Below are positions 14,701-55,943 of a DNA stretch of 64,000 bases, piece after piece. Within the stretch, counting starts at the first letter, position 1; each line of letters opens with the position of its first letter. The stretch is taken from the sequence record OM456492.1; one strand, written 5' to 3'. Both the position numbers and the translations under genes were made by a program. The notes under the pieces are model-generated. The model searched no databases and was not told the origin of the DNA. It saw nothing but the letters and a program-made list of their open reading frames with translations.

Positions 14701-15915
14701 TAAGTTTACGAAACGTTTAGAAGATTCGTTCAGGAACTGATACGCTTTGGCGGTGACGCGGCCCGCTTCTGCCAGGCGCTCAACTTCCTGTTTAATCACA
14801 GCATCGTGCGGGATGGTACGTTCTACGACGATGGTGGTTGGTTTGACATCTTCTTTCGGTGCTTCGATGACCAGATCTTCTTTCTCATCGAACTCATGAT
14901 CGTTCAATGTATCGTCAACGTTGTCGCCTTGTGTTGCTTCATCGTCAACGATATCGAGCGTTTCCTCCGGCTTATTAGCAACGGTTTCAACAGCATCGCC
15001 ATCCTCACCCAGATGGACACGCTCGTCACCTTCCGGTGTAACGAACTCGTCATCTTCGTAGTCAGTAGACGGCGGTACGGTCATCACGGTAGTCAGCGTA
15101 CGGTAGAACATTCTACCCATTTGTACGTCAGTCAAACGTCCACCGGCAGACTTACGCATTCTTTCAATTACACCCATGTTCATGGATGTAAAACCGCCGT
15201 TGTGCGTGAAGATAAAGTTCACACGCGACAGCTGGTTCATGTCCATACCGTCAAACAGGGTTGCTTGCTGATCGCCGTAAGCCCAACCGAACAGTTCCAG
15301 TAACCACAGGAGGTTGAAGTCCTTAAAGTGCTCCAGTTTGGTTTTAACACGATCGTTATACGTCATTTTAAAACGATCGAAAGAAGGTAGCACGTTACCC
15401 AGTTCAATGATGTAATAGTTCTGACGCATGTACTCACGTGCGTCAGTTTTCATCTGGTTAGTTATCAGCAGCTGAATGTTGTGCAGACGTTCGTACCAGG
15501 ACATCAGAGTATCAGGGTAGAAATAATGCGGCAGCATCGGTGTGTAGTTTTCGATGAGCAGCACTTTTGGATCTGAACGCACCACGCCGTCTTCAATCAT
15601 GCGACGAATACGACGGTTGTTACGATGGTACTGGAAGATTTGACGTTCTTGGCCAACAACCGGTTTCTTACGCGGATGGCCAATAATGCCGTCTTCAGGC
15701 AGCTGGAAGTGATGACGAATCATCGCCGGTTTTTCCAGCTGGCCAAAACACGGCGTAGTTAACGGCGGCGCTAAAACCACCTGGTCTAAATCGATGGTGT
15801 GGTAGATAGAACCACGTGGGAGCTGGAGCTTCTCCAGCGGGATAATACGCGGGCGACCGAACTCATCGGTCTTGCGCACGGTAAAGCGCTGGTTAAACTG
15901 TTTCAGAAAAATCAT
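11710..15915 (-). CDS. Virion RNA polymerase beta subunit, N-terminal/major part
   Basis: 1401 aa with RpoB-like motifs: QNFVGIQFGSA, IEDSNAIS, ADKMVIANQLKTTV and DGQELDIIFGRDSVDARI. Confidence 0.9.
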   Translation of the reverse strand: MIFLKQFNQRFTVRKTDEFGRPRIIPLEKLQLPRGSIYHTIDLDQVVLAPPLTTPCFGQLEKPAMIRHHFQLPEDGIIGHPRKKPVVGQERQIFQYHRNNRRIRRMIEDGVVRSDPKVLLIENYTPMLPHYFYPDTLMSWYERLHNIQLLITNQMKTDAREYMRQNYYIIELGNVLPSFDRFKMTYNDRVKTKLEHFKDFNLLWLLELFGWAYGDQQATLFDGMDMNQLSRVNFIFTHNGGFTSMNMGVIERMRKSAGGRLTDVQMGRMFYRTLTTVMTVPPSTDYEDDEFVTPEGDERVHLGEDGDAVETVANKPEETLDIVDDEATQGDNVDDTLNDHEFDEKEDLVIEAPKEDVKPTTIVVERTIPHDAVIKQEVERLAEAGRVTAKAYQFLNESSKRFVNLPNPYNPKETYGEGLTIDPKKLEVKAEPKKIERLVTDEAWAENTTDQIIRRYNQEIFPKDVLGAVASSQRLGLAIHNHTVEKEISVTGNIEHHTLRIQPIGGEPTTVRFSIPALTEDGTWVANGVEYTMRRQRVDVPIRKVSHDTVALTTAYGKNFVRRSDKVVNDYGRWLTNAIITRAVDPKNTEITDAKLANVFDPLSKLPRQYTEMARRVAAFNAIGYQWNFDIKQKAAFFNEGQLADADRVELVPVAKKPRSHVIVGMDKNSQLYRVDKDKTEPLGTLAEVFGVDTAKAPREMTELSLMGKSISLGFVFAYYLGLTGMLKHFGISYEVLSVGQRIDKGQFDSIIRLQDAKIAIVCENDQQRMIVNGLDRYIKHFTTYTESEVDREDIYLNLLRDADGLTPRYIKELKLMRTAFVDDMHARILRKMGEPETFIGLLERSNELLQTDHTLPEINGDEMMFVGNQRISYHIYTAMVRAMRNYNNAPNSNRKFELTQDMVWGAINSDPSVLLAPGANPIQNIKEKDVVTMGGTGGRNRKTMVYSTREFQPSDLGIISGNTVDNGDVGITAFATNNPRYDTVDGTTFKKDLNKLKPGEALSFIDGLVPDTLMDDAKRQNFVGIQFGSATSCVGATTTPYRTEQEKFVAHRTSVKHARVIDKPGKIVEVLNDHVKIKYDDGEEEAFPLGRWFGPHEGTYYPHTLVTKWKRGDKLPAGAVITYNEQHFEPDIYDPTQVSFKNGILATVALIEGEEVIEDSNAISERFAAKAEADVTKLKEVTMTFTQNLLEMVKEGDHVDVDSILCTFTDNLTGDMSGFSKEAAETLRELSSFAPRSGVRGFIDKIEVVYHGEVEDMTPSLAEMVRKYDRIRRKTALALKRDEPKDGRVNGDFRVEGVPLAYNSLCVRFYITHRVEMAAADKMVIANQLKTTVQEVMYGTNKTEDGQELDIIFGRDSVDARIVGSIMRIGTTNAVGYRGGENIGRILDGEDVPALPAKIN

Positions 15916-15933
15916 ACATGTGCCTTATGGGTG

Positions 15934-17547
15934 TCATTTCAACAGCGCAGCAGTCGTTCTTTTAATCACGTTGTTAACCGGATTGATTTTGAAACTGCCG
16001 TCTGTTGCAAACCAGTAGTTTTTCGAACTGACCCACTTCCGATTTTCCTCGAGCGCTTCGGTTGACATCGGGCTGTTTGCTGAGCCGGTGTCACCATCGT
16101 AGTCACCACCCAAGCCCCCTAATCGGGATGGATGTGGTGCCATGGATTCCACAAAGGTTTTCACGGTACGGTCAGGGAAGCTAATTGCTCCCTTCTCTTT
16201 TAACGTGACCCAATCGTCTTCCAGTTCATGCAAATAGAGGGAAGAGGTGGTGGTCTCCAATCTTATGGTCGAGGAGTAAGTCGAACCGCGTCCCGTAACC
16301 GGATAACGCGTGATGAACGAGAAGTAGTCATTCCAAATATCGTAACCTGACAAATAGAGGAGTTCTGCTAAGCTCAGTCCGCGGACAAGCTTACGGTCAC
16401 GTCCTTCCGGCAGGTCTTCAATATCGTAAAAGATTTTGAAGCTGCGTTTGTCTTGGTAGATTAATGCCACGTAATGGTCCGGATCAATCATCAGTGGTTT
16501 ATGTCGAAGCTCGCGCGCTTCCATTCTGTTGATGAGAGTTTCGATACCATCGTCGGTAGTGAAAAGGTCATACACCCGCCCGGAGACTTCCAGGAACTCA
16601 CGCTTGAGTGTTTTGGTGTTAACGCCGTATAAGTTGCCGTCCCCTGCCCGGATGTTACTGAGGTAACGTTCACGGATGTGGTATTGAGCCACAGGCAGTA
16701 ATGCCTTCAGAGTTTGGTACAAACCGATACGGGTATCCGTTGGACGAATCGCATCTTCGCGACCCATGACCTTGGAACCGGTTGAGAATGAAGACAGTAC
16801 GTTACGCGTACCGTTCATTAACTTACGTGACGTCACTTTACGACGTGCAAAACCACCTTTACCATCTTGGATGTTAAAGAAGTACATCCAGATATCATTA
16901 AAGGTTTGTTGGAGCTTCCAGCGAACCGGGTCAGTCAGTTCCGTTCGCGTACTGCGGTCGGGGATTGCACGCGCCAGAGAAATCAGACGACGGTAGAGTC
17001 CGCCAATCTCTTCTTCTTGGTCGCGGCCATCCTGACGAATGACCAAATCACGTAATCCCGCAGGTAGAACCAGCACATAGCGGCTGAGACTGACCGGACG
17101 GAACTTATTGAAGAAATCGACTGTCTCGTCGCGACGCATTGATTCGTTGCGTCCTGGCGTCAGTTGTTCGTAGTAGCGTAGGAAGAAGTTGAAGCCGGTG
17201 TCTGCACCTTTATCACTGGGCAGAGCCGGCTCGAAATCTTTTTCTTTCTCATTCCAGATAGCGAATCGCTTCCCGGAACAGATTTCTTCGTACAGCTGTT
17301 TCAGCTGGAACAACGCCAAACAAACGGTCGGCGAAATGATATCCAGTTTGATATCAATGTACGAGAACGTTGAGTCTCGTGCCTCGCTCCCTGTGAGGCC
17401 AAATATTTCAGTTGAATACAGTCCTTCAGGGTGAAAGTTTTTCGTCAGTCCCTGAAAGGTGTCTGTTGTTGTAACTGGTTTTAAATGCGACACCAGGGAC
17501 TTGTTGACGTTTAACAGGTAAAAGTCAACCCAGTTTAGCTTTCTCAC
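15934..17547 (-). CDS. Virion RNA polymerase beta-prime subunit carrying the catalytic DxDGD
   Basis: GLYSTEIFG, RKLMNGTRNVLS, ITRYP and GGDYDGD motifs. GTG start after an AGGAG RBS. Confidence 0.92.
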   Translation of the reverse strand: MRKLNWVDFYLLNVNKSLVSHLKPVTTTDTFQGLTKNFHPEGLYSTEIFGLTGSEARDSTFSYIDIKLDIISPTVCLALFQLKQLYEEICSGKRFAIWNEKEKDFEPALPSDKGADTGFNFFLRYYEQLTPGRNESMRRDETVDFFNKFRPVSLSRYVLVLPAGLRDLVIRQDGRDQEEEIGGLYRRLISLARAIPDRSTRTELTDPVRWKLQQTFNDIWMYFFNIQDGKGGFARRKVTSRKLMNGTRNVLSSFSTGSKVMGREDAIRPTDTRIGLYQTLKALLPVAQYHIRERYLSNIRAGDGNLYGVNTKTLKREFLEVSGRVYDLFTTDDGIETLINRMEARELRHKPLMIDPDHYVALIYQDKRSFKIFYDIEDLPEGRDRKLVRGLSLAELLYLSGYDIWNDYFSFITRYPVTGRGSTYSSTIRLETTTSSLYLHELEDDWVTLKEKGAISFPDRTVKTFVESMAPHPSRLGGLGGDYDGDTGSANSPMSTEALEENRKWVSSKNYWFATDGSFKINPVNNVIKRTTAALLK

Positions 17548-17576
17548 TTTTAAGCTCCTGAATTGGAAGAAACATT

Positions 17577-20500
17577 ATGGCAAAAAGAGGCAAAGACGGT
17601 TTCGATGATATCGATTTAGATAGACTCGACGACTGGGATGATTTCGGTGAACCACCCCGTCCCAAAGACGAGAAAAAACGAAGCCCGATACTCAGTACCC
17701 TGAATGTTGCCAGGAAGTCGGCGTTGTCAACTATCTGGCCAGAAGGGAAACGTGACCAAGTTATCCTCAAGGGGATGCCTAAGCCGGCAGCTGATGCATA
17801 CGAGGGCTATCAGTCAGCGGCAGCTGCAGCAAAGGACATTTACGCCCATACGAAAGGGGAGCTTGAGAAGACCGAGCGCACGCTGAAGATGCAAGCACGC
17901 CAACTCGGTCCGACGATGAAGAAATACTTGCCGGATGCAGTTACTAAGCGCTTCGACAAGTGGTCAAAATCTGACCAGTTGGATTACCAAAATTACGATC
18001 CTAATCAGGCGTTGATGGATCGTGAACTGGGCGACGTTTTCTCAGGTGTGCCAAAGGACGCCGAAGAACAACGTCAGCTGCAGGACAGCATGGTAGAGGA
18101 CAAGCTCCGTGACAGCATCAAAGAGATGCGCGCGGATGCAATGCACCAAACCATGATTGGGATGGCGAAAGACATTAACCTGCTAACCGGGTTAAGCCGC
18201 GGGGTATTCTTAAACATCGAGCGTAAGAAACTCGAACTGCAATACCGTACCCTGTTTGCCATCCAAGACATCGTGAAGATGAAGCAGTCGGAGTTCGATC
18301 GTAATACGCCTGCTTTAGAAGCCATCGTGAAGAACACGGCGCTGCCGGATTACGCGAAGGAAGACTTCTCAGAAGTCCGTTGGGCGAACGTTAAACGCCA
18401 AGCCGCGGAATGGATGAACCCGTTGCGTTATGCTGACGGGTTTATGGACATGATTCGCGAAAATACCAAGAAGAAGATTTCTGGTATATTTGGCGAAGGT
18501 CGTGGTTTGTTAGAGTCTGTTCTCGGCATGGGTGTTGAAGACGATTTCGGCATGAGCGACAGCTCTTCGTTGACTGCCGAACGTCGCAAAACAAATGCTC
18601 GCGATAAAGCGACTGCGTGGGGTAGTGGATTCCTTGCGAAGAAACTACTCGGTCCACAAATCGAGAAACTCCAGAAATGGACTCGGGAGGAGATGGAGAA
18701 AAATCCAGAGGTCATGAAACGGCTGCAGAAAGGCGCGTTCACCTTTGGTAATCTTTCCTCTATCTCTAACTCAGCCATCGCAGGCGAAACGCAAGGACCA
18801 TTGGCGGATTTGTTCCGGGTATTGAATGAACTCGGTATTGTCCAACCGTTAAACCGCGAGAAAGCTTTCCTTGACGAACGTAATGGCGAAACGTTAAGCC
18901 GTTCGGCGAAGTTTGACCGTAAAGCATATCTTAGCCTGGTTGAAGTTATCCCCGCTTGGCTGGCAGAGATTAACAAATCTGTTCGTCGGGGTTATGGCGA
19001 ACATGCCGATCTGGAATACGACATCACCAGTCGTGGATTCGTAGACCGCAAAGTGGTCGGTAACCGCGTGCGCAAGGCGGTTGCAAACGATGAACAACGC
19101 CTGCGTCTCCAAAATTCCATTAACAGCACTGTGGATTTTGTTGACCGCGGCAAAACGCTCTCGCAGAAGGATCGACAGCATCTCGCCGACTATATCGAGT
19201 CACGTGCCTCACAGGGCCGCGCATTCGACGTAGAAGCGATTCTGAAAGACCCGATGCATCTTCATCGGTATATGCCAGGAAGCTCCGCAGAACGCATTAA
19301 AGAAGTGTTACAGGGGCATTCTGACAGTCTTACCGGCGGTAGCAACGAATTAAGTAACGAACTGGCTCGTAAAATCTCCACAGTACAATCGTCTATCACC
19401 CAGCGTCAGGCAGTTATCGACGAAGCGGTGAACATTTACGGCGAACGTGCGCTACGCGATGCAGGTATCTTCAACTACGACGCGAAGAGTGACACCTTCG
19501 GCGTGGATAAAGACCTCTCCGATCCCTACACCTTGTTTAATGACTTGGCGATGGGTAAGACACGCAGTGGTCGTGCACTGACTCGTGACCAGGAGATTCA
19601 ACGTAAACTGCAAAATGGTTCAGCGTTAGGCGACTACTTGCGCCGGATGAACCAAGGGGCAAATGGTGGTGTCGATGACACGTCGTTGCCGCCGGCTTTA
19701 CGTGGCGGTGGTAAAGGCCGCGGAATGTCGCCTCGGCAGTTAGCCGCAGTTCTCTACGGTGAAACCTCGACTAACTTTGTTGAATTGTTGAGTCAACGTA
19801 ACCGCGGCGAAGAAGCACCACGGAATAACTTTGACGGCATCATCGAAGCGATTCGGGGTAATAACAACAGTGACACCCTCCAGAAAATTCTGGAACACGT
19901 CAGAAGTATGGACGAAGAAGGGGTTCTCCTGGCTTCGTTAGCAGGGGGTGCTGGTTCTGGTGACGAAGAGATGGGACCACCTCGTCCTGGTGGTGGTAGC
20001 GGTGGCGGTAAACGCCGCCGTATTATCATCGGTGAGGATGGGCTTATTCGTCGTTGGGGCGGTGTGTTGTTCGACACTGCAGCAGGAATCGGTGGCTTTG
20101 CAAAACGTGGTGTTAAAGGTGCCTGGAATAAACTGAATCAGTTCGGTGGCTGGGCGCGCGGTAAAATCGCGGGGATGGGCGGCGGAGAAGGTCCTGGTTT
20201 CTTAACCCGGATGCGTGGCCTTATCAGCGGTAGTGTTCGTGGGGGCTTTGAAGCGGTAAGCTCTTTCGGTAAAGGATTGCTGGGTATCCGCGACGTTTAC
20301 GATGACCACGGTAATGTTGTTCTGCAAGGTGCACGTCTGGAAGCTGGAGAATACTATCAGGTCATTGATGGTAAAATGGTTCAGCTGAAAACGCTGGACG
20401 ACATCAAACTGGGGAGTGATATTGTTGACTCCGCAGGTAATCTGATATTAGCAGCCGCTGACTTAGCCGCTGCGGGTAAACTCCGCTACTATAAAGGCGG

Positions 20501-23500
20501 GAAAATCCAAGCACTGACCCAAGGTCTGGCCAGTAAGATTGGCTTGGGCTTTAATAAGGTGGCTAAGCTACCGAAACGGTTCCTGGATTTCCTGTCGCCA
20601 AAAGCGGGCAGCATCGTTGGTAAGATTAAGGACTGGCTGAACGAGATTCCGGAAGGCGAAGAAAAGACACGTCTCCAGAAAGCGTTCAACCGCGTAACGA
20701 GCTTACCGGGTAAAGTGCTCGGTTTTGCGAAACGTGGTGTCGACCGTCTGAAAGACATGATTACCGACAACCCACTGACGCGTTGGTGGAAAGGCCGTAA
20801 AGATGGTGGGGGAGGTGGTTTCAGTCTCTTCTCATCGACCGGCAAGAAAACCAACCACATCCTTATCCGTATCTATAAACTGTTGAACCAACGTTTACCG
20901 GGCGAACCGGAAGACGAAAGTTGGACAGAAGAAATGGAGAAGGGTGTCGGTGGCGGTGGTAGTACGATCGGCCGTGCAGTTCGCGGGGCGTATAATCGTG
21001 CGAAATCGTCGTTGTCTGAACGTTTTGGTGGACGTTGGTCAAGAACAAAAGCGTTCTTTGGTCGTGGACGTGACCGCCTGCGTGGTTGGTTCAGTGGTTT
21101 CCGAGGCCGGGCTGGGGATATGCTCGATGGATATCGTGGAGCACGACACGACATTGCTACACGTTACGAAGTTGAACGTCGGTTGGCTGGACGCGATGAC
21201 GATGTTGCTGAGTTTTATCGCAGCCATTTGAACGCGAAAGGTGGCCTTTCTGGCCGTAAAGTCTACGGTGATGCGAAGGAAGACCTTGAGACCGCCCGTG
21301 ATGCGGCAGGGAGGGTTATTAACAAAGGGAAGAATGCTGCCAAGTCTGCAGGTGCAAGGTTATTCGAACGCTTGGACCGAATGATTGGCTTGCAAGAGAT
21401 GTCGTGGTTTAACACCATGCGCGAATCAGTATCCCGTGCAGGTGGTGACGACGGCATTATTCGTACCATGTTTGCGAAGTTCGGTAAACGTAACAAGCCG
21501 CCTGAAGGTGATGAAAAACGCGACTACTTTAACTTCTTCAAACGTTGGCGTGAGAAACGTAAGGAGAAGAAAGAGAAAGCGCAGGGCTCCAAAGGGAAAT
21601 CTGGCGGTCTGTGGGATATGGTGAAAGGCTTACCTATCATCGGTCCCATCGTCAGTATCTTGGGAACTGTGGGTAATATACTCGGTTCTATCACGAAATG
21701 GGGCGTGTTAAAACCAGTAGGTCTTTTAGGTAAGGCTGCGTGGAATGTTGGTAAGTTCGCAGTAACCCGTTTGGCAGCACCCGCGGTGTCCGCTGTGGCA
21801 ACTGCGGCATCTGCCGTCGTGACCGCAGTGGGTTGGCCGGCAATTCTCATCGGTGGTGCGATCGCTGCGGCTGGTTACGCTGCGTACAAGATCGCAACGA
21901 CTACCTATACCCAGTACCTGGATAAGATGCGTTTAGCTCAGTACGGTTTCCGTGATTACGATAAGTGGTCGTCGGACGACGGGGCGAAGGCGCGTTACTT
22001 AGAAGACGCATTGCGTGAGTATGTGTCTTACGCGGAAGATGGCCAAGCCAGTCTCCGCGGGCTAAGTGGAAAAGACGTTCAGAAGTTAGCTGAAGGGTTC
22101 GGTATTAACGTTGAGGAAAAAGGCGAGATGTTGGCCTTCCAAGCGTTTATGCTTCAGCGCTTCATTCCGATTTATCTCCGTTGGATTACGGCACTGAAAT
22201 CAATGCCGAATAGTATCCAGTTGGCTGACGTCGGCGATGCGAAGAAAGTATCGAAAGAGGACATGCAGACACTCTTCAACAAAATGAAGATGACTAAGGA
22301 TGCAAAAGCGTTCTCTTCGTTAACAGACCCACGCAAAGTCAACCAAGGTTTCTTCTCGAAAGCTTGGGACGTTGTAACCTTTACACCGAAGGAGTTCTTG
22401 AGCGGTGAAGAGGTTATGGAAGTGCAGAATGAAGTCGAGCGTGCAATCAAGTTCAGAATGGACGATAAGAAAGCACGTAAGTACGGAATGGCACCGGCCG
22501 TGGAGGGGATTAAATCCGCTGGCGTTGATGAAGCTATCAACAAACTCGGACAGCTGGATAACGAACGTAACAAAAATCTGGCGAAGGTAGAAGGTTGGGA
22601 AGACGGAACAGAGCAGGTTCAGATTCAGGTAGACTGGAATGCGGTGCTCGACCAGAAAGACATGAATGCGATGGAGTCGGTACGTTGGAAGACTTATGGT
22701 TTTACCACCATCGACAACGCCACACGCACGTTGATTACGGTATTCGAGAAGAACGTCATTAAGGACATTGACGTGAAAACCGCGAGCTATAAAGGCGATT
22801 GGAAGAAAGCAATCGCTTCGATGGTTCCAGACGCTATCGGTACACCGAAAGAAGATCGATTGAAACGGTGGTTCTTTGACCGTTTCTTACCGGTATTCAT
22901 GACGTATTTGGTTGGGGTGAAGCGTTACCTGCCAACAGCCGATCCGCTGAACTTGAAGCTGACAGGTGGTTACCTGTACGAAATCAGCTTGATGATGTCA
23001 ACAGCCTACAGCTTGAAAGGCGGTATAAGACAGTCGGTGTGGGAAGTGAATATCAACCCATTAGGGGGTGAGGCTAACACGAACCCATCGTCCATCAAAG
23101 CCGAACTGGAAACGCTGAAGCTGCTGTCAAAAGAAGCTGACCTTGCCGTGCGTAACATGATCAAAGCCATTAAAAATAATGGCAAGCGTGCACGCTGGAA
23201 GGATCGTAACAAGAACCGCAGTTCTCTGGAGGTCACCGGTGAAGATGATGAGGACTCGAACATCAGTTCGGGAGATTCTTTGTCATCCGACGGTGCTCGC
23301 GCCTCAGGTTATATCCCAACGGGTACAAGCGGTGGCGTACCGGGTAACTTAGGCCAAGTCGTCGATGCGGTTGGTGGTGTGCGGAACTACGCCGCAATGA
23401 CCACGGGTTCGTCTTCGATTAACCTGAGTGATGTGAAAGACGGTGATTATAAGTCACTGGCTGAAAAATACCCGATAGAAATGTTGGGTAGAAAGGGTGC

Positions 23501-24698
23501 GTTGAACGTTCCAAATATCAAAGCATTGATTACCGATGCAGCGAACATGATGGGCGTGCCACCTGCAGTGGCGTTAGCAATGGCTAAGGCGGAGTCTGGA
23601 TTTAACTACACCGCTAAAAACCCGTATGCTTCGGCGTCTGGGTTGTTCCAGTTTGTTAACGGTACGTGGGACGGGATGATGAAGGGGTATTCGCGGAAGT
23701 TCGGTATTCCGCGTGTTAACCAGATGGACCCGTGGGCGAATGCTATATTGGGTGTACAGTTCATTCGTGACAACATCCAACAAGCACAACGTGACCTGGG
23801 TGGTAAAGCACCACCTCCAGCCGTGGCTTATCTGTATCACTTCCTGGGTGCAGGCGGCGGTAAGAAATTCCTGGAAGCATGGAAGCGTAATCCGAATATG
23901 GCGGCATCAAGTGCTCCTGGGATTACATCTGCAATACTGAGAGGGAATGCCAACGTCTTCTACAGCAACGGTCGTATACGTAGCGTGGATGGGGTTATTC
24001 AGGAACTGAACCGCCGTATGGGCGCAATTTCCGCCAACGAAGTCGCTGCCGATCCGAGCAAGACGATGGATATGGTTGCAGGATTGTCGCCTAATTCACC
24101 AACCAACCCGGCAGCAGCAATGGGTGCACCGGCCGCTAATGACCCGAGTCTGTCGCCAGCAGATAACCTGCCAGCAGATAATGCTAATCGTCGTGATGAC
24201 GCATTAACGCAGAAAGGGGCCATGGCGGCACAAGATGCAATGGCTACCGCCGCAGGTAATGTAGGACCAGCAGCACCTACACCAACTACAGGTGGTACCG
24301 GAACATCCGATGCCTCAACAACGGCCGAAACCGTAGCGTCGCAAGCTGCAGCAGAAGGATTGTCTGCGACGGATGTTGCTAAAGTGAAAGCAGGCGCGGA
24401 AGCGCAGGTTAACGCAGCAGCACGTCCAGTTGCCGCTCCAACTTCTGATGCTACAGCATCGACGCCGACGCTGAATGGTGACCCGATAGATGTTCAGCAG
24501 CTCAAGGTACTGATTCAGTCTCGCGATTACTTGAAAGAGATTCGTGATATTTTGAAATCAAATCCAAGAGCGGCAAACGACACGCGTGGTGGTAGTATCC
24601 AGCAAGCGGCAAATGTGCCTCCTCCGGGCTCAGCTGCACGTAGGCAGGAAATAACCCAACCGACACCGTCGTTAAACGTAAGTCGGAAAGCAAGCTAA
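17577..24698 (+). CDS. Tape measure protein with C-terminal lytic transglycosylase (phiKZ gp181-like)
   Basis: 2373 aa with Gly/Lys/Arg-rich tracts and a hydrophobic segment. SLT motif AMAKAESGFN...ASGLFQF lies near the C-terminus. Confidence 0.88.
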   Translation: MAKRGKDGFDDIDLDRLDDWDDFGEPPRPKDEKKRSPILSTLNVARKSALSTIWPEGKRDQVILKGMPKPAADAYEGYQSAAAAAKDIYAHTKGELEKTERTLKMQARQLGPTMKKYLPDAVTKRFDKWSKSDQLDYQNYDPNQALMDRELGDVFSGVPKDAEEQRQLQDSMVEDKLRDSIKEMRADAMHQTMIGMAKDINLLTGLSRGVFLNIERKKLELQYRTLFAIQDIVKMKQSEFDRNTPALEAIVKNTALPDYAKEDFSEVRWANVKRQAAEWMNPLRYADGFMDMIRENTKKKISGIFGEGRGLLESVLGMGVEDDFGMSDSSSLTAERRKTNARDKATAWGSGFLAKKLLGPQIEKLQKWTREEMEKNPEVMKRLQKGAFTFGNLSSISNSAIAGETQGPLADLFRVLNELGIVQPLNREKAFLDERNGETLSRSAKFDRKAYLSLVEVIPAWLAEINKSVRRGYGEHADLEYDITSRGFVDRKVVGNRVRKAVANDEQRLRLQNSINSTVDFVDRGKTLSQKDRQHLADYIESRASQGRAFDVEAILKDPMHLHRYMPGSSAERIKEVLQGHSDSLTGGSNELSNELARKISTVQSSITQRQAVIDEAVNIYGERALRDAGIFNYDAKSDTFGVDKDLSDPYTLFNDLAMGKTRSGRALTRDQEIQRKLQNGSALGDYLRRMNQGANGGVDDTSLPPALRGGGKGRGMSPRQLAAVLYGETSTNFVELLSQRNRGEEAPRNNFDGIIEAIRGNNNSDTLQKILEHVRSMDEEGVLLASLAGGAGSGDEEMGPPRPGGGSGGGKRRRIIIGEDGLIRRWGGVLFDTAAGIGGFAKRGVKGAWNKLNQFGGWARGKIAGMGGGEGPGFLTRMRGLISGSVRGGFEAVSSFGKGLLGIRDVYDDHGNVVLQGARLEAGEYYQVIDGKMVQLKTLDDIKLGSDIVDSAGNLILAAADLAAAGKLRYYKGGKIQALTQGLASKIGLGFNKVAKLPKRFLDFLSPKAGSIVGKIKDWLNEIPEGEEKTRLQKAFNRVTSLPGKVLGFAKRGVDRLKDMITDNPLTRWWKGRKDGGGGGFSLFSSTGKKTNHILIRIYKLLNQRLPGEPEDESWTEEMEKGVGGGGSTIGRAVRGAYNRAKSSLSERFGGRWSRTKAFFGRGRDRLRGWFSGFRGRAGDMLDGYRGARHDIATRYEVERRLAGRDDDVAEFYRSHLNAKGGLSGRKVYGDAKEDLETARDAAGRVINKGKNAAKSAGARLFERLDRMIGLQEMSWFNTMRESVSRAGGDDGIIRTMFAKFGKRNKPPEGDEKRDYFNFFKRWREKRKEKKEKAQGSKGKSGGLWDMVKGLPIIGPIVSILGTVGNILGSITKWGVLKPVGLLGKAAWNVGKFAVTRLAAPAVSAVATAASAVVTAVGWPAILIGGAIAAAGYAAYKIATTTYTQYLDKMRLAQYGFRDYDKWSSDDGAKARYLEDALREYVSYAEDGQASLRGLSGKDVQKLAEGFGINVEEKGEMLAFQAFMLQRFIPIYLRWITALKSMPNSIQLADVGDAKKVSKEDMQTLFNKMKMTKDAKAFSSLTDPRKVNQGFFSKAWDVVTFTPKEFLSGEEVMEVQNEVERAIKFRMDDKKARKYGMAPAVEGIKSAGVDEAINKLGQLDNERNKNLAKVEGWEDGTEQVQIQVDWNAVLDQKDMNAMESVRWKTYGFTTIDNATRTLITVFEKNVIKDIDVKTASYKGDWKKAIASMVPDAIGTPKEDRLKRWFFDRFLPVFMTYLVGVKRYLPTADPLNLKLTGGYLYEISLMMSTAYSLKGGIRQSVWEVNINPLGGEANTNPSSIKAELETLKLLSKEADLAVRNMIKAIKNNGKRARWKDRNKNRSSLEVTGEDDEDSNISSGDSLSSDGARASGYIPTGTSGGVPGNLGQVVDAVGGVRNYAAMTTGSSSINLSDVKDGDYKSLAEKYPIEMLGRKGALNVPNIKALITDAANMMGVPPAVALAMAKAESGFNYTAKNPYASASGLFQFVNGTWDGMMKGYSRKFGIPRVNQMDPWANAILGVQFIRDNIQQAQRDLGGKAPPPAVAYLYHFLGAGGGKKFLEAWKRNPNMAASSAPGITSAILRGNANVFYSNGRIRSVDGVIQELNRRMGAISANEVAADPSKTMDMVAGLSPNSPTNPAAAMGAPAANDPSLSPADNLPADNANRRDDALTQKGAMAAQDAMATAAGNVGPAAPTPTTGGTGTSDASTTAETVASQAAAEGLSATDVAKVKAGAEAQVNAAARPVAAPTSDATASTPTLNGDPIDVQQLKVLIQSRDYLKEIRDILKSNPRAANDTRGGSIQQAANVPPPGSAARRQEITQPTPSLNVSRKAS

Positions 24699-24746
24699 TC
24701 GTAGGGGGTGGTAACACCCCCTAATCATCTTACAGAGAGGTTTTAC

Positions 24747-26969
24747 GTGGAAGCAAGACAACTAAAAGATTCAGGATGGGTAACCGGCCTGTTTGGCGGT
24801 ACAACCGCACAGCGCGATGAGCGCTTCCTGGGTTTGCGTCGTTACTCTAACGCGATGCTCTCGTTTGAAGATACCACGATGGGTGGTTCGCAAGCGTTAA
24901 ATGCGCCGCCGCAGTTTACGATGTTTGCTGATCCGAGTTCAACAGGTGCTTTTGCACAACCTGATGCAGGTCGTGGCTCGTACTCAAAGTACGTTAAAGG
25001 CCAAGACCAACGTGGTTCCTATCGTTTAGGGACTTTCTACTACGAAGCTATTAACCAAAACAGTTTTTATCTTCATTGTCGTTTCGGTAAACCTCGATAT
25101 ATCGGGGTCGCTGCATTCTTCGCGAATATGTACGATTCCAACCTAGCGTATCTGGCACGCACAGGTGACTACCCAGGTATGTTACGCGCGATGGGGACGT
25201 ATGTTGCCGCCGCAGCAATATGGGCCGCAGTAGGTACGGTTGCTTTTGCGGTTATTCTGATTACGCCACGTATGTTGAAGATGGTGCTGAATAAGCAGAC
25301 TTCTCGCTACTACTACGTGAAACCGACAATGCACTTGTATCTGCGCGCTGTGCAGAATATGGTCAACACACAGTTAGTTTATCGCCGATTGGTACCAACG
25401 GGTGTGTTAGGGACTTTCCAGCTTGCTAATGCTGTAGATGGGTCTGAGAAAGGCGGTACCGCCAATAAATACAACGGTGACCGCAAAGAGTGGTACTCGA
25501 TGCTGCCGGAAATCTGGACAGCTGACGGTGAGTTCGATATCTATCGAATGATTAACCGCTACCAAACATTAGCCAACTACCAGGCGAAAACCATCGATAA
25601 AATTCGTAAAGAGTCGAGCAACGAAGAGGACATGGCTCGTCGTTTGCGAAACTTCTATCTGGAAGCGACGTACTCAACAACCCATTTGGAGAAAGCTGCG
25701 CAGTACGAGGTTTCTTTACGTAACCTTGAATACGTAGCCAAAGCTGGTAAAGGGTACGATGCCGGTTTTGAAAACGTCGATAACAAAGAAGACGAACTGG
25801 TAGCAGGGATGAATGGAAGCTTTCAGGATGCTCAGTCACAAGGAGGTAAAGCTGAAAACTTCGAAAACGAAGGTGATGTGCAACGTAAAGAGCTTGCCGA
25901 TCGCATGGCGCAGGTTGAAAAGAACCAGGCTCAAGTTGCCAAGAGTCAGACTGAGGCAAACTCGATGGACGAGAACAATCTCGACATTGGGAAAATTGAA
26001 AACTGGATGGACCAAGGCCAGAAAGAATCTGTCGGTAGCGTCTTTAAAGACTATATCGATATTTTAGATGGTGCTATGGATGGCCTAACTTCGAACATCG
26101 CTTCGGAGATACGTAATGGTTCGCAATGGATTACTTGGCGTGTTGATGGGCGTGACACCGTAGGGCGTTCGTTCTCCAACACCACCAAAGAACCTGAAAT
26201 CTCTGGCACGGTTAACTCCGCCACGCAGAAAGCACGTTCTTTGGAAGTAAACCTCTCCGGTGGTAAGACTGGTTTCGACGCAGTCGATGGTCTCATTACT
26301 GGGTTGAAGTCCGCCTTTACAGGCGCACTCGATTTCTTGCATTTATCAGGGATTATGTCACTGTACAACTCGTCGGTGATTGACTTCCCGGAAGTGTGGG
26401 ACTCCTCAGACACCTCAGGTGACGATATCTCGCTAAGTATTCCCCTTCGTTGTTGGTCGGGTAACGACTTAGATGTGTTTCAGGATCTGATTGTCCCGTT
26501 GTCGTTCTGGTTAGCGGCAGTTTGTCCGCTAGCAACCGGTAAACAATCGTTTACACACCCGTTCTATCTGGAATGTTATTCTCGCGGTCGTTATTCCATG
26601 CGTAATGCCATGGTAACTAACCTGAGTCTCCAGTTCGGTACAGGTGGTTTAGGTTGGCGTGCGGACGGTCTGCCGTTGTCGTGTGATATACAGGTAACTA
26701 TTCGTGACCTGTCGCGCGTCATGTACATGCCGATTGTAACTGATATTGGTGTGTTTGATGATGATAACAAGTTCAGTGAATTTATGTCTGTGTTGGGCGC
26801 TGCCACGCTTTACGAGCGTACCAACGGTATCGCGCAGGCTAAAATCAATGCGTCTATCTGGGCGCAGAACTGGGCAAGTGCCTGGTCGCAGGGTAGCATC
26901 GTCAACGCCGCCTTAGATATCATACCGGCCCGACAAATCGCGAACATTTTCCTACCACAAGCGCGTTAA
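24747..26969 (+). CDS. Tail/baseplate structural protein (phiKZ gp182-like)
   Basis: Follows the tape measure. GTG start chosen after an AGAGG RBS (track start 24708). C-terminal beta-rich CDIQVTIRDL motif. Confidence 0.65.
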   Translation: MEARQLKDSGWVTGLFGGTTAQRDERFLGLRRYSNAMLSFEDTTMGGSQALNAPPQFTMFADPSSTGAFAQPDAGRGSYSKYVKGQDQRGSYRLGTFYYEAINQNSFYLHCRFGKPRYIGVAAFFANMYDSNLAYLARTGDYPGMLRAMGTYVAAAAIWAAVGTVAFAVILITPRMLKMVLNKQTSRYYYVKPTMHLYLRAVQNMVNTQLVYRRLVPTGVLGTFQLANAVDGSEKGGTANKYNGDRKEWYSMLPEIWTADGEFDIYRMINRYQTLANYQAKTIDKIRKESSNEEDMARRLRNFYLEATYSTTHLEKAAQYEVSLRNLEYVAKAGKGYDAGFENVDNKEDELVAGMNGSFQDAQSQGGKAENFENEGDVQRKELADRMAQVEKNQAQVAKSQTEANSMDENNLDIGKIENWMDQGQKESVGSVFKDYIDILDGAMDGLTSNIASEIRNGSQWITWRVDGRDTVGRSFSNTTKEPEISGTVNSATQKARSLEVNLSGGKTGFDAVDGLITGLKSAFTGALDFLHLSGIMSLYNSSVIDFPEVWDSSDTSGDDISLSIPLRCWSGNDLDVFQDLIVPLSFWLAAVCPLATGKQSFTHPFYLECYSRGRYSMRNAMVTNLSLQFGTGGLGWRADGLPLSCDIQVTIRDLSRVMYMPIVTDIGVFDDDNKFSEFMSVLGAATLYERTNGIAQAKINASIWAQNWASAWSQGSIVNAALDIIPARQIANIFLPQAR

Positions 26970-26991
26970 TATACCATAGAGGTAGTGCGTT

Positions 26992-27543
26992 ATGAGTTTA
27001 TTTGGAAAGACCGCAAAAGAGCTGGTTTACGATCTCATCGTGTCTCAGAATCCTGGACTGACTGGTAAGGGCGTGACCATCGATAAATTGTCGTTCGGTA
27101 ACCCGGCACACATCACCGCAGCCGATCCTGACCCAGAGCAATACACCAGACTGAACACCAACCTTGATGTTTCTGGTATCATTGAGAAGGGTACGTTCGG
27201 TAAGATGGGTCTTACTTATCGACGATTGGACGTAGCACATTTGTTTGAGAACGTCGTGTTGTCTGTCGATGGCACCGGCGTGTCGACCGCTGCCGATCTT
27301 GTTCCCTTGCTGCGAACCAAATACAATTGGTTAATCGACGCAACCGAGATTTACGCGACAGAATCAATGACTTCCCCCACGAAACACAATCTGCGTTTCA
27401 ATGGAAAGTCGCTGGCGTGGACAGGTACGGTTGAGGTTTATTTGACCGAAGTTCCGAGCGATGGTGTCGATATCAGTAAACTGATTACCGTTACTGAGTT
27501 GAACGGTTTGGTTTATGACGTTTCCGACATGGCTCAAGCGTAA
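26992..27543 (+). CDS. Virion structural protein (baseplate/fibre-attachment type module)
   Basis: 183 aa with GAGG RBS. LTYRRLDVAHLF and SLAWTGTV motifs are typical of jumbo-phage virion modules. Confidence 0.6.
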   Translation: MSLFGKTAKELVYDLIVSQNPGLTGKGVTIDKLSFGNPAHITAADPDPEQYTRLNTNLDVSGIIEKGTFGKMGLTYRRLDVAHLFENVVLSVDGTGVSTAADLVPLLRTKYNWLIDATEIYATESMTSPTKHNLRFNGKSLAWTGTVEVYLTEVPSDGVDISKLITVTELNGLVYDVSDMAQA

Positions 27544-27600
27544 CAAAAAAATAAGTAATGCGAGTACCCCTAACGGGGTACTCGTTTGCTTTTATTTTTA
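27543..27600. terminator. Bidirectional intrinsic terminator
   Basis: CGAGTACCCC-taac-GGGGTACTCG with flanking A and T runs between convergent genes. Confidence 0.85.
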
Positions 27601-28020
27601 GCGTTCGATAATCACTTTTACGATATCTTCTACCGGAGGGTAATACCACAACACCACACTGTTTCGTCCCAAGTCTTTTGGAAACGTTTGACAGTACGCA
27701 ATGTCGGTGCCGAAGCGTTCAGAGAGCTTTAAAACGTTCTCTGGGAACTGACAACCGCCACGCCAATCGCGCGTATAGAGTACCTGCTGTAATAACATCA
27801 CATTAGCATCGAAGAAGTACAAATTTTCTACCGGCGCAATGTGAGGTACCGGAATTGGTGTGTCGGTAAGTACGAACTCCAAACCACCGCATTGTTCTGA
27901 ACGCTCCGCTAGGAATTTCAGATGCCATGGCATTAGACCGTGGTCTTCCCAGACGATATTGTTGACCAGTAAACGATCAGCGTATTCGTCGTAATCAACC
28001 GTGAACAGTTTCTTCGCCAT
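27598..28020 (-). CDS. Hypothetical protein
   Basis: Start set at MAKKLF after a GAGG RBS. Overlaps the end of the MazG-like gene. Confidence 0.65.
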   Translation of the reverse strand: MAKKLFTVDYDEYADRLLVNNIVWEDHGLMPWHLKFLAERSEQCGGLEFVLTDTPIPVPHIAPVENLYFFDANVMLLQQVLYTRDWRGGCQFPENVLKLSERFGTDIAYCQTFPKDLGRNSVVLWYYPPVEDIVKVIIER

Positions 28021-34051: not shown

Positions 34052-34711
34052 TTAGATGCGGGTTTCATTATCCCAGTAGTTCGAAATAACTAACTGGGAC
34101 TCCACATCCGACGGGTTGCCTGGAATAGCGTCTTCTACTGCAAACGGCAATACGTCCTTAATAGACGTCAGCTCAAATCGCTCAACTTCCAGTTCGACTT
34201 TTACCCACTCGCCGAATGTAGTGGAGTCGCGCAGTTCGTTGACAAGGTCTTCGAAACCTGCCTGCGATTCGATAACTGGGTGACCTGCCAGTTTAAAGAA
34301 CAAGTCGATATCCCAATGCTTCGCACCTTGCTCTGCCAGCTCGCCTGGCTCGAGTTTGATACGACGCACGAGATGTGCAAGATTGCCATCTTCGTAGAAG
34401 GTCAGACCGGAAGCAAACCCGATATCTGAGTTCTCTTCGATACGACCATCAGATGCTTGTCGTTTTAACGTTAAGACTGCGGTTTTATCGGTGGACAACC
34501 GCACACGACGTTTGCCGTTAACGACCGGCATGATGACGTCCAGGAACGTTTCACCTGTCTGACCAAACAGCCATTGCCAACCTTCTTCAGTGGGTTTAAC
34601 CCACATGCAATACTCACGTTCCTTCTCCGTAGAGATGGACTCACGCGCAACAGTAATGACTTCTTTTTCCTGCTGCTCGTCGAGGTTTTTGAGAATATCA
34701 AATAGTCCCAT
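34052..34711 (-). CDS. CYTH (triphosphate tunnel metalloenzyme) domain protein
   Basis: EKEREY (ExE motif), RVRL...LTLK, RIEE, WDIDLF and VKVELEV in CYTH order. Confidence 0.7.
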   Translation of the reverse strand: MGLFDILKNLDEQQEKEVITVARESISTEKEREYCMWVKPTEEGWQWLFGQTGETFLDVIMPVVNGKRRVRLSTDKTAVLTLKRQASDGRIEENSDIGFASGLTFYEDGNLAHLVRRIKLEPGELAEQGAKHWDIDLFFKLAGHPVIESQAGFEDLVNELRDSTTFGEWVKVELEVERFELTSIKDVLPFAVEDAIPGNPSDVESQLVISNYWDNETRI

Positions 34712-35549
34712 CGTCGATTCCTAGTTTCTTCAAAAGTTCGGCTCGATCAAACGTACTGTCTTCAGGATCGATATGTTCAGCTATCATCTCAATCAGATTT
34801 GGTAGCCAGTCCCAGTGTGCTGGGAATATCTTACGCCCTTGCATCATGTAATAATGCTTAAGCGGGATACGTGCTCGCAGAATCTCTGCAAATACATTAC
34901 CTAACGATGTCCCGTCGACCGACAGTATAAAGAGTTTATTTACCAGCGCATGGATAAAACGGCTTTCTGTAACCGGAGTAAATGTACCTGGCTTATAACT
35001 GGTTCCTCCGTAGATTTCCGCTTTCAGATTACGACCTAACCGGATACAGTCGGTGCCATCTAGCGCACGTAACTTCTCAATATCAGGCCAGGTGTTCACT
35101 GCCTGTTGCATGATATCAAATTCCATCACCAAAGTGCGGTCATCAATCTCACGCATCAGGTAATCCAGAATACGCAGATAGTGGTAATAACCCTCGAGCG
35201 TTCGGAAAGGCCCGTGGGGGGTAACAAAATACTCACCAGGGCGAGCATAAAAGTTACTCGCCATCCGACCTATCTCAGTTCGACCCTGCGAATAGATGTT
35301 GAAGTGATTCAAACCATCTGTAGACGGCGTGATATCCACCAGGGTACTCTGATAACCCATACGCAGTAAATAGCGTACAAAGGCTTCCTTTTCTTCTGGC
35401 GGGAGGATGGGACGTAAAACGGGATATGTGGTTCCTACTGCGGCGGGCAATGCAAAGCCAAAAGCAGCCGCCAAAGCATCCACCGATGCACCATCATCGC
35501 GTAGGCGTTCCAACGCACTACGCAAAAACTTACCTTCATCTTTCGACAT
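34698..35549 (-). CDS. NADAR-like protein (T4 gp30.3 type)
   Basis: NIYS...GRMASNF...F.TPHGPF.TLEGYY..L, LRALDG..CIRLGR and LKHY match the recalled gp30.3 pattern SNFA..F..DG..F..LEGF.Q, IFGLSG..AQQAGR and LKH. Confidence 0.6.
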   Translation of the reverse strand: MSKDEGKFLRSALERLRDDGASVDALAAAFGFALPAAVGTTYPVLRPILPPEEKEAFVRYLLRMGYQSTLVDITPSTDGLNHFNIYSQGRTEIGRMASNFYARPGEYFVTPHGPFRTLEGYYHYLRILDYLMREIDDRTLVMEFDIMQQAVNTWPDIEKLRALDGTDCIRLGRNLKAEIYGGTSYKPGTFTPVTESRFIHALVNKLFILSVDGTSLGNVFAEILRARIPLKHYYMMQGRKIFPAHWDWLPNLIEMIAEHIDPEDSTFDRAELLKKLGIDDGTI

Positions 35550-35558
35550 AGAGGTACC

Positions 35559-36833
35559 TTATAAGGCGAAATAGCTCTGTACCAGTGTACTGGCAGACTG
35601 ATATTGGACACTACCACCGGCGATAACGTATGGGCGTTTCTCGGTAGTTAAGAGTGCTTGAATCGCATTACTGTTGGCGTATGTGTAAAGCTTAAGCTCA
35701 ACCATTCCAGGATTCGTTTTAGAGATATCCCAGTTTGGATTAAGCGCTTTAAACAACGTTAACAGTCGCTGACCGTAGGTACTGTAACCCACGCCTGGTT
35801 CAACGTTAAGGTTCATCAGAAGATTCTGAATAACGGTATCTGCAATCTCAGCACCTTGACCAGGCTGTAGTTTAGGCAAGTAATACTCAACAGAATTGAG
35901 ATTACCCGCCGCTGCAGCCTGTATCATCAGTTCGCCGTACAACGCTTGCTGTGCAACAGGATCGGTGATGGCCTGAATCATCGGATCGATACGATTCGGC
36001 AGGCCGAATTGATTAAGCTTCGTGGACATCCCGTATATCAACGCAGACGAGGTGTTGATATCCAGTGAGGAGAAATTACCACTCCCGCCCGTAAAGCTAT
36101 CAATGATCCCATCGATAGACAAGAAGTCGTCCAGGTCCTTAAAGCTATCGAACGTGTGTGTAACATCGTCAATCAGTGCAGTGACTTGCCATTTGGCGCT
36201 ATTGGCCATGTCGACGTAGTTACCGATTTCACGTTGCACCTCACCAGGCAGTTTGGCAAGCTGTCCCGCGATGTTCATCGTGGATTCCAGGCGAGCTTTC
36301 ACCGACGCATAATCTGTCCCGACTGCGCTTAAAGCGCTATCGCGAAGATCAGTCAATGTGTCCCATCCTTTACTTAACAAACTACCTGCGCCGCCCGGTG
36401 AGAGATAGCTCAGTGCAGTTTTCCCTTCCTGGTTTACCTTCTGGAAGGGTTCGGACACATCGCGCTTCTGCGGATCAATAACTGGCAGCGCTTCTTTCGT
36501 GTTGGAAGCAAAAGTAGGCACACGTTGTGGCGGCGATACTCCGGAAGCCGCTGAACCTGCTGCCTTTTTACCACCTACCGTGACTTGGTCGCCACCCCCG
36601 AACACGTTACCAAATTTTTCACTTATCGTGTTGCCAATGTTGGAGATCTTGTCGAAAGTTTCCCCTGCTTTGGCGGTTACGTTATTGTACAAATTTTGAG
36701 CACTTTCAATACCGCGCTCGGCATTACCAATCGTTGACTGGACACGGTTTTGAACATCGTTAACTTTGTTCTCTATTGCGCCCGTTGTGCTGCTTATCTG
36801 GTTGGTAATCCCATCAAGGTTGTTCAGTTTCAT
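35559..36833 (-). CDS. Probable virion structural protein
   Basis: 424 aa with a low-complexity N/S/T/G-rich N-terminus. Function inferred from composition and neighbourhood only. Confidence 0.5.
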   Translation of the reverse strand: MKLNNLDGITNQISSTTGAIENKVNDVQNRVQSTIGNAERGIESAQNLYNNVTAKAGETFDKISNIGNTISEKFGNVFGGGDQVTVGGKKAAGSAASGVSPPQRVPTFASNTKEALPVIDPQKRDVSEPFQKVNQEGKTALSYLSPGGAGSLLSKGWDTLTDLRDSALSAVGTDYASVKARLESTMNIAGQLAKLPGEVQREIGNYVDMANSAKWQVTALIDDVTHTFDSFKDLDDFLSIDGIIDSFTGGSGNFSSLDINTSSALIYGMSTKLNQFGLPNRIDPMIQAITDPVAQQALYGELMIQAAAAGNLNSVEYYLPKLQPGQGAEIADTVIQNLLMNLNVEPGVGYSTYGQRLLTLFKALNPNWDISKTNPGMVELKLYTYANSNAIQALLTTEKRPYVIAGGSVQYQSASTLVQSYFAL

Positions 36834-54515: not shown

Positions 54516-55109
54516 TTACGCATCGGCCTCAAAGAACGGCTGGTTTGGTACCACTGCGTATTCGAGCACGAACAGATGTTCTGGGGCATCTTCTGCTCGC
54601 CACAGTTTGTGACACGTTGCCAGTTTTTCCAGGATGGTCAGCCAGCTGAGTTGGCAAAACGCACGATCGCCGAAGAACAGTTTCTGCAGTGCAATTGACA
54701 CATCCATATACGCCTGTTTGAAGTCGAGCCCTTTATCGTAACCTGCCGACTGTCGCCAGGTCAGCACGAAACCTGCTTCGGTTTCGTTAATTGCTGGACG
54801 TAAACCACAAATCCACATCAGTGCCAGATTAACGTTCCAGTCGAATTCGATACCTTCGTCTTCGTCATCACCAAACGCCGCGTTTAACGCGTCGTAGAAA
54901 CCGTGGTTCTCTGCGAACCATTCGCCGTACTCAACGTAGACCGGTGCTTCGACAGCCTCCCCATCGACTTCACCGATAGGGCGCTCTACATAGTTCGGGT
55001 TGGTTTGAACGTGTTCCGCACCCGCGCGAATCAGTTCGTAGACATCTTTGGCGGTGATTTGTGCGGCTGTTTTAAGACCTGGATACCAGGGGCGTGTTAC
55101 GAGTGTCAA
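54516..55109 (-). CDS. Hypothetical protein
   Basis: 197 aa, TTG start after AAAGGAG, 4-bp overlap with the transglycosylase stop. Confidence 0.68.
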   Translation of the reverse strand: MTLVTRPWYPGLKTAAQITAKDVYELIRAGAEHVQTNPNYVERPIGEVDGEAVEAPVYVEYGEWFAENHGFYDALNAAFGDDEDEGIEFDWNVNLALMWICGLRPAINETEAGFVLTWRQSAGYDKGLDFKQAYMDVSIALQKLFFGDRAFCQLSWLTILEKLATCHKLWRAEDAPEHLFVLEYAVVPNQPFFEADA

Positions 55110-55920: not shown

Positions 55921-55943
55921 ATAATATCTATTTGAAACTTTTT
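55921..55943 (-). promoter_or_regulatory. Putative early promoter
   Basis: Minus strand AAAAAGTTTCAAATAGATATTAT. Confidence 0.5.

Follow-up and report, generated by a model that had tools for sequence, protein, structure and literature searches.

Among the closest described counterparts of the gene reported here are erasers of the ADP-ribose with which DarT toxins tag DNA. AdfN, the gp30.3 protein of phage T4 (Pfam family Phage_30_3, PF08010), has been established as the anti-DarT1 NADAR of the T-even phages, and T4 AdfN, NADAR-Bas32 and NADAR-Bas60 have all been found to counter DarTG1. DarG1 is the DarT1-linked NADAR antitoxin (BC4488 family; G. lovleyi 8bat, E. coli C7). The adducts of DarT2 are removed by AdfM, a chimallivirus macrodomain (PhiKZ gp104, PhiPA3 gp108, Asesino gp217) that localises to the phage nucleus; according to a 2026 study, chimallivirus DNA can be reached by DarT2 despite its shell and AdfM is needed as the counter. 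The AdfM paper does not address DarT1 or NADARs outside its introduction, and NADARs have already been reported as common in large phages. Here we analyse a 64,000-nucleotide stretch of sequence record OM456492.1 (hereafter the window), which belongs to Salmonella phage SaP7, a SPN3US-like Seoulvirus (100% identity match), and describe an open reading frame (ORF) located at positions 34698-35549 on its minus strand. Profile comparisons identify the product of this ORF as a divergent NADAR; the clade to which it belongs is large, phage-borne and sister to T4 gp30.3/AdfN.

Relationship to NADARs at the profile level

The ORF runs from an ATG at 35549 to a TGA at 34698 and encodes 283 residues plus the stop, exactly as a sequence-only reading of the window had proposed; the motif AAGG sits about 10 nt 5' of the ATG. 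Its product is 100% identical to SaP7 ULF48420.1 and has orthologs in SPN3US (gp224, SPN3US_0224) and in Asesino (gp246), all of them annotated, as in every other record, as 'hypothetical protein'. Taken as a single sequence, the protein gives little away: phmmer against the PDB returned no match, a pairwise BLASTP comparison with T4 gp30.3 was null (E 15), and a hidden Markov model (HMM) of gp30.3 on its own failed to retrieve the ORF from the window. Among the PHROGs, the protein falls into phrog_652 (2.3e-90), a group of unknown function.

We therefore turn to the family as a whole, for which four alignments were used: A1 (11 sequences), A2 (a 91-member family), A3 (82 query-family sequences) and A4 (48 members of the gp30.3 family). 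The A1 profile found no NADAR in the PDB, its sole match being a short and spurious one to lytic transglycosylase B. The A2 profile, in contrast, reached two solved NADARs, the Phytophthora nicotianae (Pn) protein 8bau (7.9e-6) and E. coli YbiA 2b3w (8.3e-5); as a calibration, a profile built from the proven gp30.3 family matches YbiA at 5e-3 only. In the alignments between A2 and the PDB proteins, the column of E119 coincides with the NADAR catalytic glutamate, G172-R173 correspond to the G-R pair of the diphosphate-binding loop, and R173 aligns with Pn R79. Five residues (G79, N84, G94, E119 and H232) are invariant in all 91 diverse members, and a further set is conserved in at least 90% of them (D78, H82, Y86, S87, S98, N99, F100, F115, K205, P229, Y233, Y234 and W248).

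The comparison with T4 gp30.3, whose sequence (L003:901-1359) was located via a primer that the AdfN paper gives for cloning, gave a similar picture. As a positive control, this sequence matched PF08010 at 4.6e-71. With hhalign, A3 aligned to the T4 sequence over 103 columns (95.1% probability, E 3.4e-8) and to the A4 family over 149 columns (97.7%, E 1.6e-12), placing T4 residues 1-152 on query residues ~80-262. The aligned blocks comprise S98-N99-F100, the segment from F115 to L118-E119-G120, G172-R173 and K231-H232. Reciprocal searches were also positive, the query-family HMM finding 48/48 gp30.3-family sequences and the gp30.3 HMM finding 35/82 sequences of the query family. T4 gp30.3 is itself a member of phrog_652 (9e-51), as is a Kuttervirus homolog (gp54), whereas a canonical T5-type phage NADAR (PF08719, 7e-22) aligned more weakly with the query family (77% probability, 56 columns). 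Because the T4 gp30.3 match is the stronger of the two and phrog_652 is common to both proteins, we regard AdfN as the closest validated relative. The motif blocks that the sequence-only reading had matched to T4 gp30.3 are thus real, if visible only at the profile level, and its assignment of the protein to the gp30.3-type NADARs is borne out by the hhalign results, phrog_652, the profile matches to solved NADARs and the conserved Glu and His. On this sequence evidence, homology to the NADAR superfamily, with the gp30.3/AdfN clade as the closest branch, is highly likely.

Predicted fold and added segments

An AlphaFold2 model built with the family alignment was of high confidence for both the whole protein (predicted local distance difference test (pLDDT) 94.3, predicted template modelling score (pTM) 0.91) and the NADAR-like core (residues 73-262 or, more tightly, ~78-258; 34764-35333, minus strand; pLDDT 93.8, pTM 0.89). 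The core is predicted to contain strands at residues 82-84, 108-110 and 113-115, followed by the core helices, strands within 230-241 and a final helix. This layout of a small N-terminal sheet, helices, a C-terminal hairpin region carrying H232 and a last helix would fit the published NADAR fold. When the core was searched with Foldseek against 350,542 PDB chains, the stand-alone NADAR structures took the first two places, YbiA with E 0.095, probability 0.89 and template modelling (TM) scores of 0.43/0.47, and 8bau with E 0.27 and a TM-score of 0.33, both below significance. With the whole model they ranked second and fourth, neither of them significantly. In a viral structure library, uncharacterised members of the family made up the strong matches, and below them came many proteins named NADAR (E 0.06-1.4). 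The structural models thus agree with the sequence evidence and are not significant alone; of the profile and structure comparisons with which the sequence-only reading proposed to check the NADAR class, the former succeeded (8bau and YbiA) and the latter fell short of significance.

Could the resemblance to NADAR and gp30.3 be a product of chance or convergence in a protein of unrelated fold? The absence of a Pfam match, the null BLASTP result and TM-scores below 0.5 would be expected in such a case. However, the searches of the PDB with hmmsearch, the hhalign comparisons, the PHROG clustering and the reciprocal HMM matches all agree with each other, the catalytic residues align, and the two stand-alone NADARs head the Foldseek ranking of the core, so that we consider this explanation very improbable.

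Three segments distinguish the ORF product, which has neither a PF08010 match nor pairwise similarity to T4 gp30.3, from that single-domain protein of 152 residues. The first is an N-terminal extension (residues 1-72; 35334-35549, minus strand), predicted to form three helices (7-18, 23-29 and 51-63) with pLDDT mostly above 87; it corresponds to the extra domain of about 75 residues noticed in the sequence-only reading, which the model supports at ~72 residues. The first residue of T4 gp30.3 is placed near residue 80 of the query, and the extension is missing from both gp30.3 and the ~150-residue family members. By tblastn it was found in 38 phage records only (Seoulvirus, SPAsTU/STsAS, pEa_SNUABM_29 and Asesino), among which its identity drops from 93% to 56% and 37%, and it has no Pfam match; other long relatives (326-358 residues) possess differing N-termini, likewise without a Pfam match. 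The second is an insertion of ~24 residues (~130-153; 35091-35162, minus strand), seen as a gap in hhalign and containing an extra predicted helix (140-153). The third is a C-terminal tail of ~21 residues (263-283; 34698-34763, minus strand), present in long forms only, with a predicted helix at 269-275; around its start D261, P262 and F267 are nearly invariant among the long forms in A1.

DarG1 shares with the protein the superfamily, an N-terminal extension ahead of the core and, by analogy, the proposed substrate, guanine-linked ADP-ribose (G-ADPr) in DNA. The two extensions have no detectable similarity, and a likeness of ours to that of DarG1 is unsupported, 8bat having been matched weakly (E 0.91) and over the core only. 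A role of the extension as a propeptide or in capsid targeting was also considered and dropped, gp224 being missing from the SPN3US virion proteome.

Catalytic residues

Three positions are of particular relevance to NADAR activity. The catalytic glutamate lies where the first core helix begins (T4 E36, Pn E43 and E88 of E. coli C7, with mutagenesis reported), a lysine follows seven residues further on (Pn K50, C7 K95, T4 K43; the K43A mutant of T4 AdfN is dead), and a residue in the last strand defines the subfamily, being Glu in YbiA, Asp in DarG1 and His in phage gp30.3. In the SaP7 protein, the first is E119 (codon 35193-35195, minus strand), which aligns with all three counterparts and is invariant in 91/91 members. 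The last-strand position is H232 (codon 34854-34856, minus strand), aligned by hhalign with T4 H123 and again invariant in 91/91; it separates the protein from YbiA and 8bau (Glu) and from DarG1 (Asp). At the lysine position, identified by both its E+7 spacing and hhalign, stands R126 (codon 35172-35174, minus strand), in place of the essential K43 of gp30.3. The E+7 residue is Lys in 46/48 gp30.3 proteins, and 41/91 query-family members have neither Lys nor Arg anywhere between +6 and +9.

With gp30.3 the protein thus has in common the SNF block, the E119/E36 and H232/H123 pairs, the G-R block and homology along the entire length of gp30.3, and both are orphan phage genes with no toxin partner. 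It also retains canonical NADAR features that gp30.3 has lost, namely K205 and the N84/Y86/S87 strand, both alignable with YbiA. With YbiA and 8bau, the positions that align are the Glu, the E+7 residue (basic in each case), the G-R block for the diphosphate and, within the fourth helix of the core, a Lys that is conserved. The likeness also includes the family-profile matches (8e-5 and 8e-6, respectively) and the top two Foldseek places of the core; set against this are the TM-scores of only 0.33-0.47, the missing Pfam NADAR match and the added domains. A further lysine, conserved in the DarT1-associated NADARs (K115 of E. coli C7), is Ile169 in the ORF product. By analogy with the solved and mutated NADARs, E119 and H232 would flank the distal ribose while R126 and R173 would hold the diphosphate.

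Distribution of the clade

The product of the ORF matched 439 phage records by tblastn. Full-length matches are confined to SPN3US-like and Erwinia jumbo phages, and the core (residues 73-261) matches proteins of ~140-166 residues from Ackermannviridae, Vibrio phages and others. An exhaustive profile search (E<=1e-3) brought together at least 1,036 representative proteins (clusters at 50% identity), most of them 145-190 residues long, and this clade takes in the Ackermannviridae, many Vibrio phages and many jumbo phages. Individually, few of the 91 family members match Pfam: three match NADAR PF08719 (best 7e-6) and four match Phage_30_3 PF08010 (weakly). Several carry the name YbiA/DUF1768 at JGI (the Joint Genome Institute), and some are fused to Macro, YAcAr-SLOG, DUF4326 or DUF488-N3a domains, partners that published surveys link to NADAR in large phages. 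In the fusion members (P0219, P0224, P0259, P0261, P0125, P0180 and P0255) the core is a His-type NADAR. A 293-residue 'DprA-like' protein of Erwinia phage RAY (BFVD A0A173GE06), which Foldseek matched to the ORF product with E 6.6e-6, probably belongs with the SLOG fusions.

In Kuttervirus and other Ackermannviridae, a short (~140-166 residues) member of the clade lies beside genes for a histone-like protein and topoisomerase II, as exemplified by Salmonella phage FrontPhageNews gp54 (L001:1453-1953). The annotations of these members differ: one record has 'virion structural protein', and others have 'hypothetical' or 'putative N-glycosidase'. Since the Kuttervirus homolog labelled 'putative N-glycosidase' has on its own no match in Pfam or the PDB, we do not use this label as evidence. 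Another cluster of the family (P0017; 273 residues, 46% identical to the ORF product) has 316 member sequences, many on contigs of 200-225 kb filed under isolate assemblies of Salmonella enterica, Shigella flexneri or E. coli, which suggests jumbo-phage genomes carried along with bacterial isolate sequencing.

Conservation and genomic setting

Besides SaP7, 33 more SPN3US-like genomes match the window at 95-99% identity, and the ORF is uninterrupted in 24 related genomes. Relative to SPN3US, the ratio of nonsynonymous to synonymous substitution rates (dN/dS) is 0.11 overall, 0.06 for the core and 0.14 for residues 1-72; the corresponding dN values of 0.031 for the N-terminal extension and 0.005 for the core show that the extension evolves faster. 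In 11 SPFM records (LR535901, LR535903-LR535908, LR535911-LR535913 and LR535917, corresponding to SPFM1, 5, 6, 7, 8, 9, 10, 12, 14, 15 and 20) the gene was matched in 9-12 separate pieces, giving rise to fragmentary predicted proteins (P0007-P0009, P0011, P0012 and P0015), while ten sibling SPFM records carry it intact. The macrodomain gene of SPFM6 (see below) is also split, in 6 pieces. This fragmentation looks like the outcome of many small assembly-error indels, not of real decay.

SPN3US-like phages use their own RNA polymerases. Upstream of the NADAR-like gene lies the ortholog of SPN3US gp223 (35559-36833, minus strand), detected as a tail protein, and downstream that of gp225 (34052-34711, minus strand), a head protein of low abundance that the prohead protease cleaves. 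The latter overlaps the NADAR-like gene by 14 nt, and both the order (gp245-gp247) and the overlap (gp246/gp247) are identical in Asesino. This setting among the structural genes of a nucleus-forming jumbo phage differs from that of T4 gp30.3 and, lacking an adjacent DarT1 or any other toxin gene, from that of DarG1. The window contains no detectable paralog of the gene. The GC skew is positive at 14000-28000 of the window (maximum +0.20, at ~20-24 kb) and mostly negative elsewhere, the positive part probably reflecting a gene block on the opposite strand.

The virion proteome of SPN3US, a table of 102 phage proteins, lists gp223 (tail) and gp225 (head), and gp224 is missing from it. Packaging in the virion, which would fit a proposal by Iyer et al., is rejected for gp224 on this ground. 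The protein is unpackaged, so it would have to be synthesised after infection and act in the cell after its synthesis.

These data also bear on the idea that a NADAR-derived protein with lost or altered catalysis has taken on a binding or morphogenetic role tied to its structural neighbours. The position of the gene between tail and head genes, the 14-nt head-gene overlap conserved in Asesino, the exchange of Lys for Arg and the extra domains could all be read in this way. Nevertheless, E119 and H232 have remained invariant in 91 diverse relatives, purifying selection acts strongly on the core, and the protein is missing from a sensitive virion proteome that holds both of its neighbours. We consider such a role unlikely.

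An AdfM-type macrodomain in the same window

A second candidate eraser is encoded at 55928-56428 (minus strand; 166 residues), where the sequence-only reading had placed a DarG-type macrodomain. This identification is confirmed: the product, annotated in SaP7 as a hypothetical protein, matches the macrodomain portion of the NCBIfam model antitoxin_DarG (1.9e-30) as well as Pfam Macro (4e-4), and shows 68.7% identity with Asesino gp217 and 33% with PhiPA3 gp108, both of which have been published as AdfM. The gene, of DarG2-like type, is thus an AdfM ortholog. After it comes an endolysin-like gene with an SLT domain (55106-55828, minus strand), the same order as in Asesino (gp217, gp218). AdfM resembles the NADAR-like protein in being an orphan antitoxin-like ADP-ribose eraser of nucleus-forming phages, an ortholog of which lies in the same window. 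It differs in its unrelated fold, in its substrate (the thymine adduct of DarT2) and in having been experimentally characterised and localised to the phage nucleus.

Proposed function

Since the Glu and His are invariant, the protein evolves under purifying selection and every NADAR class tested hydrolyses G-ADPr, the ORF product is probably an active ADP-ribosyl N-glycohydrolase. By analogy with AdfN, it may strip guanine-linked ADP-ribose from phage DNA tagged by DarT1-type host toxins, which would complement AdfM and its removal of the thymine-linked ADP-ribose of DarT2. We put the probability that the protein protects phage DNA from DarT1-type guanine ADP-ribosylation at roughly 0.45; in combination with the macrodomain, the analogy suggests that each of the two known types of DNA tagging by DarT probably has its eraser in this phage.

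Several observations weigh against such a role. As to the assignment itself, the ORF product matches no Pfam family even at E<=10, including NADAR PF08719 and Phage_30_3 PF08010, gives no meaningful match in NCBIfam, and shows no significant Foldseek match to any NADAR structure (E 0.095-0.6, TM-scores 0.33-0.47). The main biochemical caveat is the Lys-to-Arg exchange at E+7: the position is Arg in the ORF product and in 10/10 long forms and is variable in the short forms, and in the E. coli C7 NADAR the equivalent K95R change preserves hydrolysis in vitro and abolishes the rescue of cells from DarT1. More generally, hydrolysis of G-ADPr in vitro by a NADAR has no predictive value for protection in cells, and AdfN itself is effective only in T-even phages. 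The location of the gene between tail and head genes is unlike the early-gene setting published for T4-like NADARs, and Iyer and co-workers favour the view that phage NADARs act chiefly on soluble derivatives of ADP-ribose. Our search of the literature for assays of any member of the clade found none, nor did it find data on DarT1 in the Salmonella hosts of SaP7; searches for gp224 or Asesino gp246 returned nothing relevant.

Two other roles for an active enzyme were considered. The first is that it works mainly on soluble derivatives of ADP-ribose such as immune signals, toxic by-products (ADP-ribose phosphates) or intermediates of nicotinamide adenine dinucleotide (NAD) salvage. This view is taken by two comparative surveys of phage NAD and ADP-ribose systems, and it is in keeping with the SLOG/YAcAr and DUF4326 fusions, which the survey authors tie to signalling by molecules derived from ADP-ribose, and with the variable pyrophosphate-binding Lys position in the family, which could mean different ligands. 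On the other hand, all NADARs assayed so far act on base-linked ADP-ribose in nucleic acids, AdfN, the closest validated relative, acts on DNA, and no NAD-salvage genes adjoin the NADAR-like gene. A mainly soluble substrate therefore seems to us a rather doubtful, if coherent, option.

The second is an enzyme that removes ADP-ribose from nucleic acids and whose natural target is something other than the product of DarT1, for instance G-ADPr in RNA, the adducts of YarT-like or pierisin-like toxins, or those of an enzyme of the phage itself. NADARs are also able to remove G-ADPr from RNA and, in some cases, C-ADPr; other pairings of NADARs with toxins are known (e.g., YarT-YbiA); their specificity in vivo is narrow and idiosyncratic; and the Lys-to-Arg exchange at E+7 would be compatible with a shifted target. 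Against this stand the three out of three tested phage NADARs that counter DarTG1 and the anti-DarT2 macrodomain in the same genome, which suggests a matched anti-DarT set. We judge such a target to be about as doubtful as a soluble one, and the removal of DarT1-type guanine adducts remains our preferred reading.

How the enzyme might reach its substrate is more speculative. The N-terminal extension is restricted to one lineage and missing from all other phage NADARs of the clade, and it could serve in targeting or in substrate handling inside a nucleus-forming phage. One tentative and, in our estimation, unlikely version of this idea is that chimalliviruses of the SPN3US and Asesino groups carry AdfM, against thymine adducts, and the NADAR, against guanine adducts, as a matched pair, the phage nucleus being leaky to both classes of DarT, and that the extension brings the enzyme to the shell-enclosed DNA by import or docking.

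Implications

AdfN was already established as an anti-DarT1 NADAR. What the present comparison adds is that sequence profiles place the SPN3US gp224/Asesino gp246 group, along with a clade numbering at least 1,036 representatives, among the His-type NADARs; also new are the extended architecture and Lys-to-Arg exchange of the chimallivirus forms and the co-occurrence with AdfM in nucleus-forming phages. The comparison offers a function-level annotation for a clade that escapes both Pfam NADAR and Phage_30_3 and is 'hypothetical' in essentially all records, and the variability of this clade at a supposedly essential lysine position is relevant to substrate binding by NADARs. That nucleus-forming phages still need AdfM against DarT2 shows that their protein shell shields the DNA imperfectly. 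If gp224-type proteins are indeed working erasers of guanine-linked ADP-ribose, nucleus-forming phages would be armed against DarT1 as well, and the imperfection of the shell would extend to a second class of toxin in model phages of Salmonella and Erwinia (SPN3US and Asesino).

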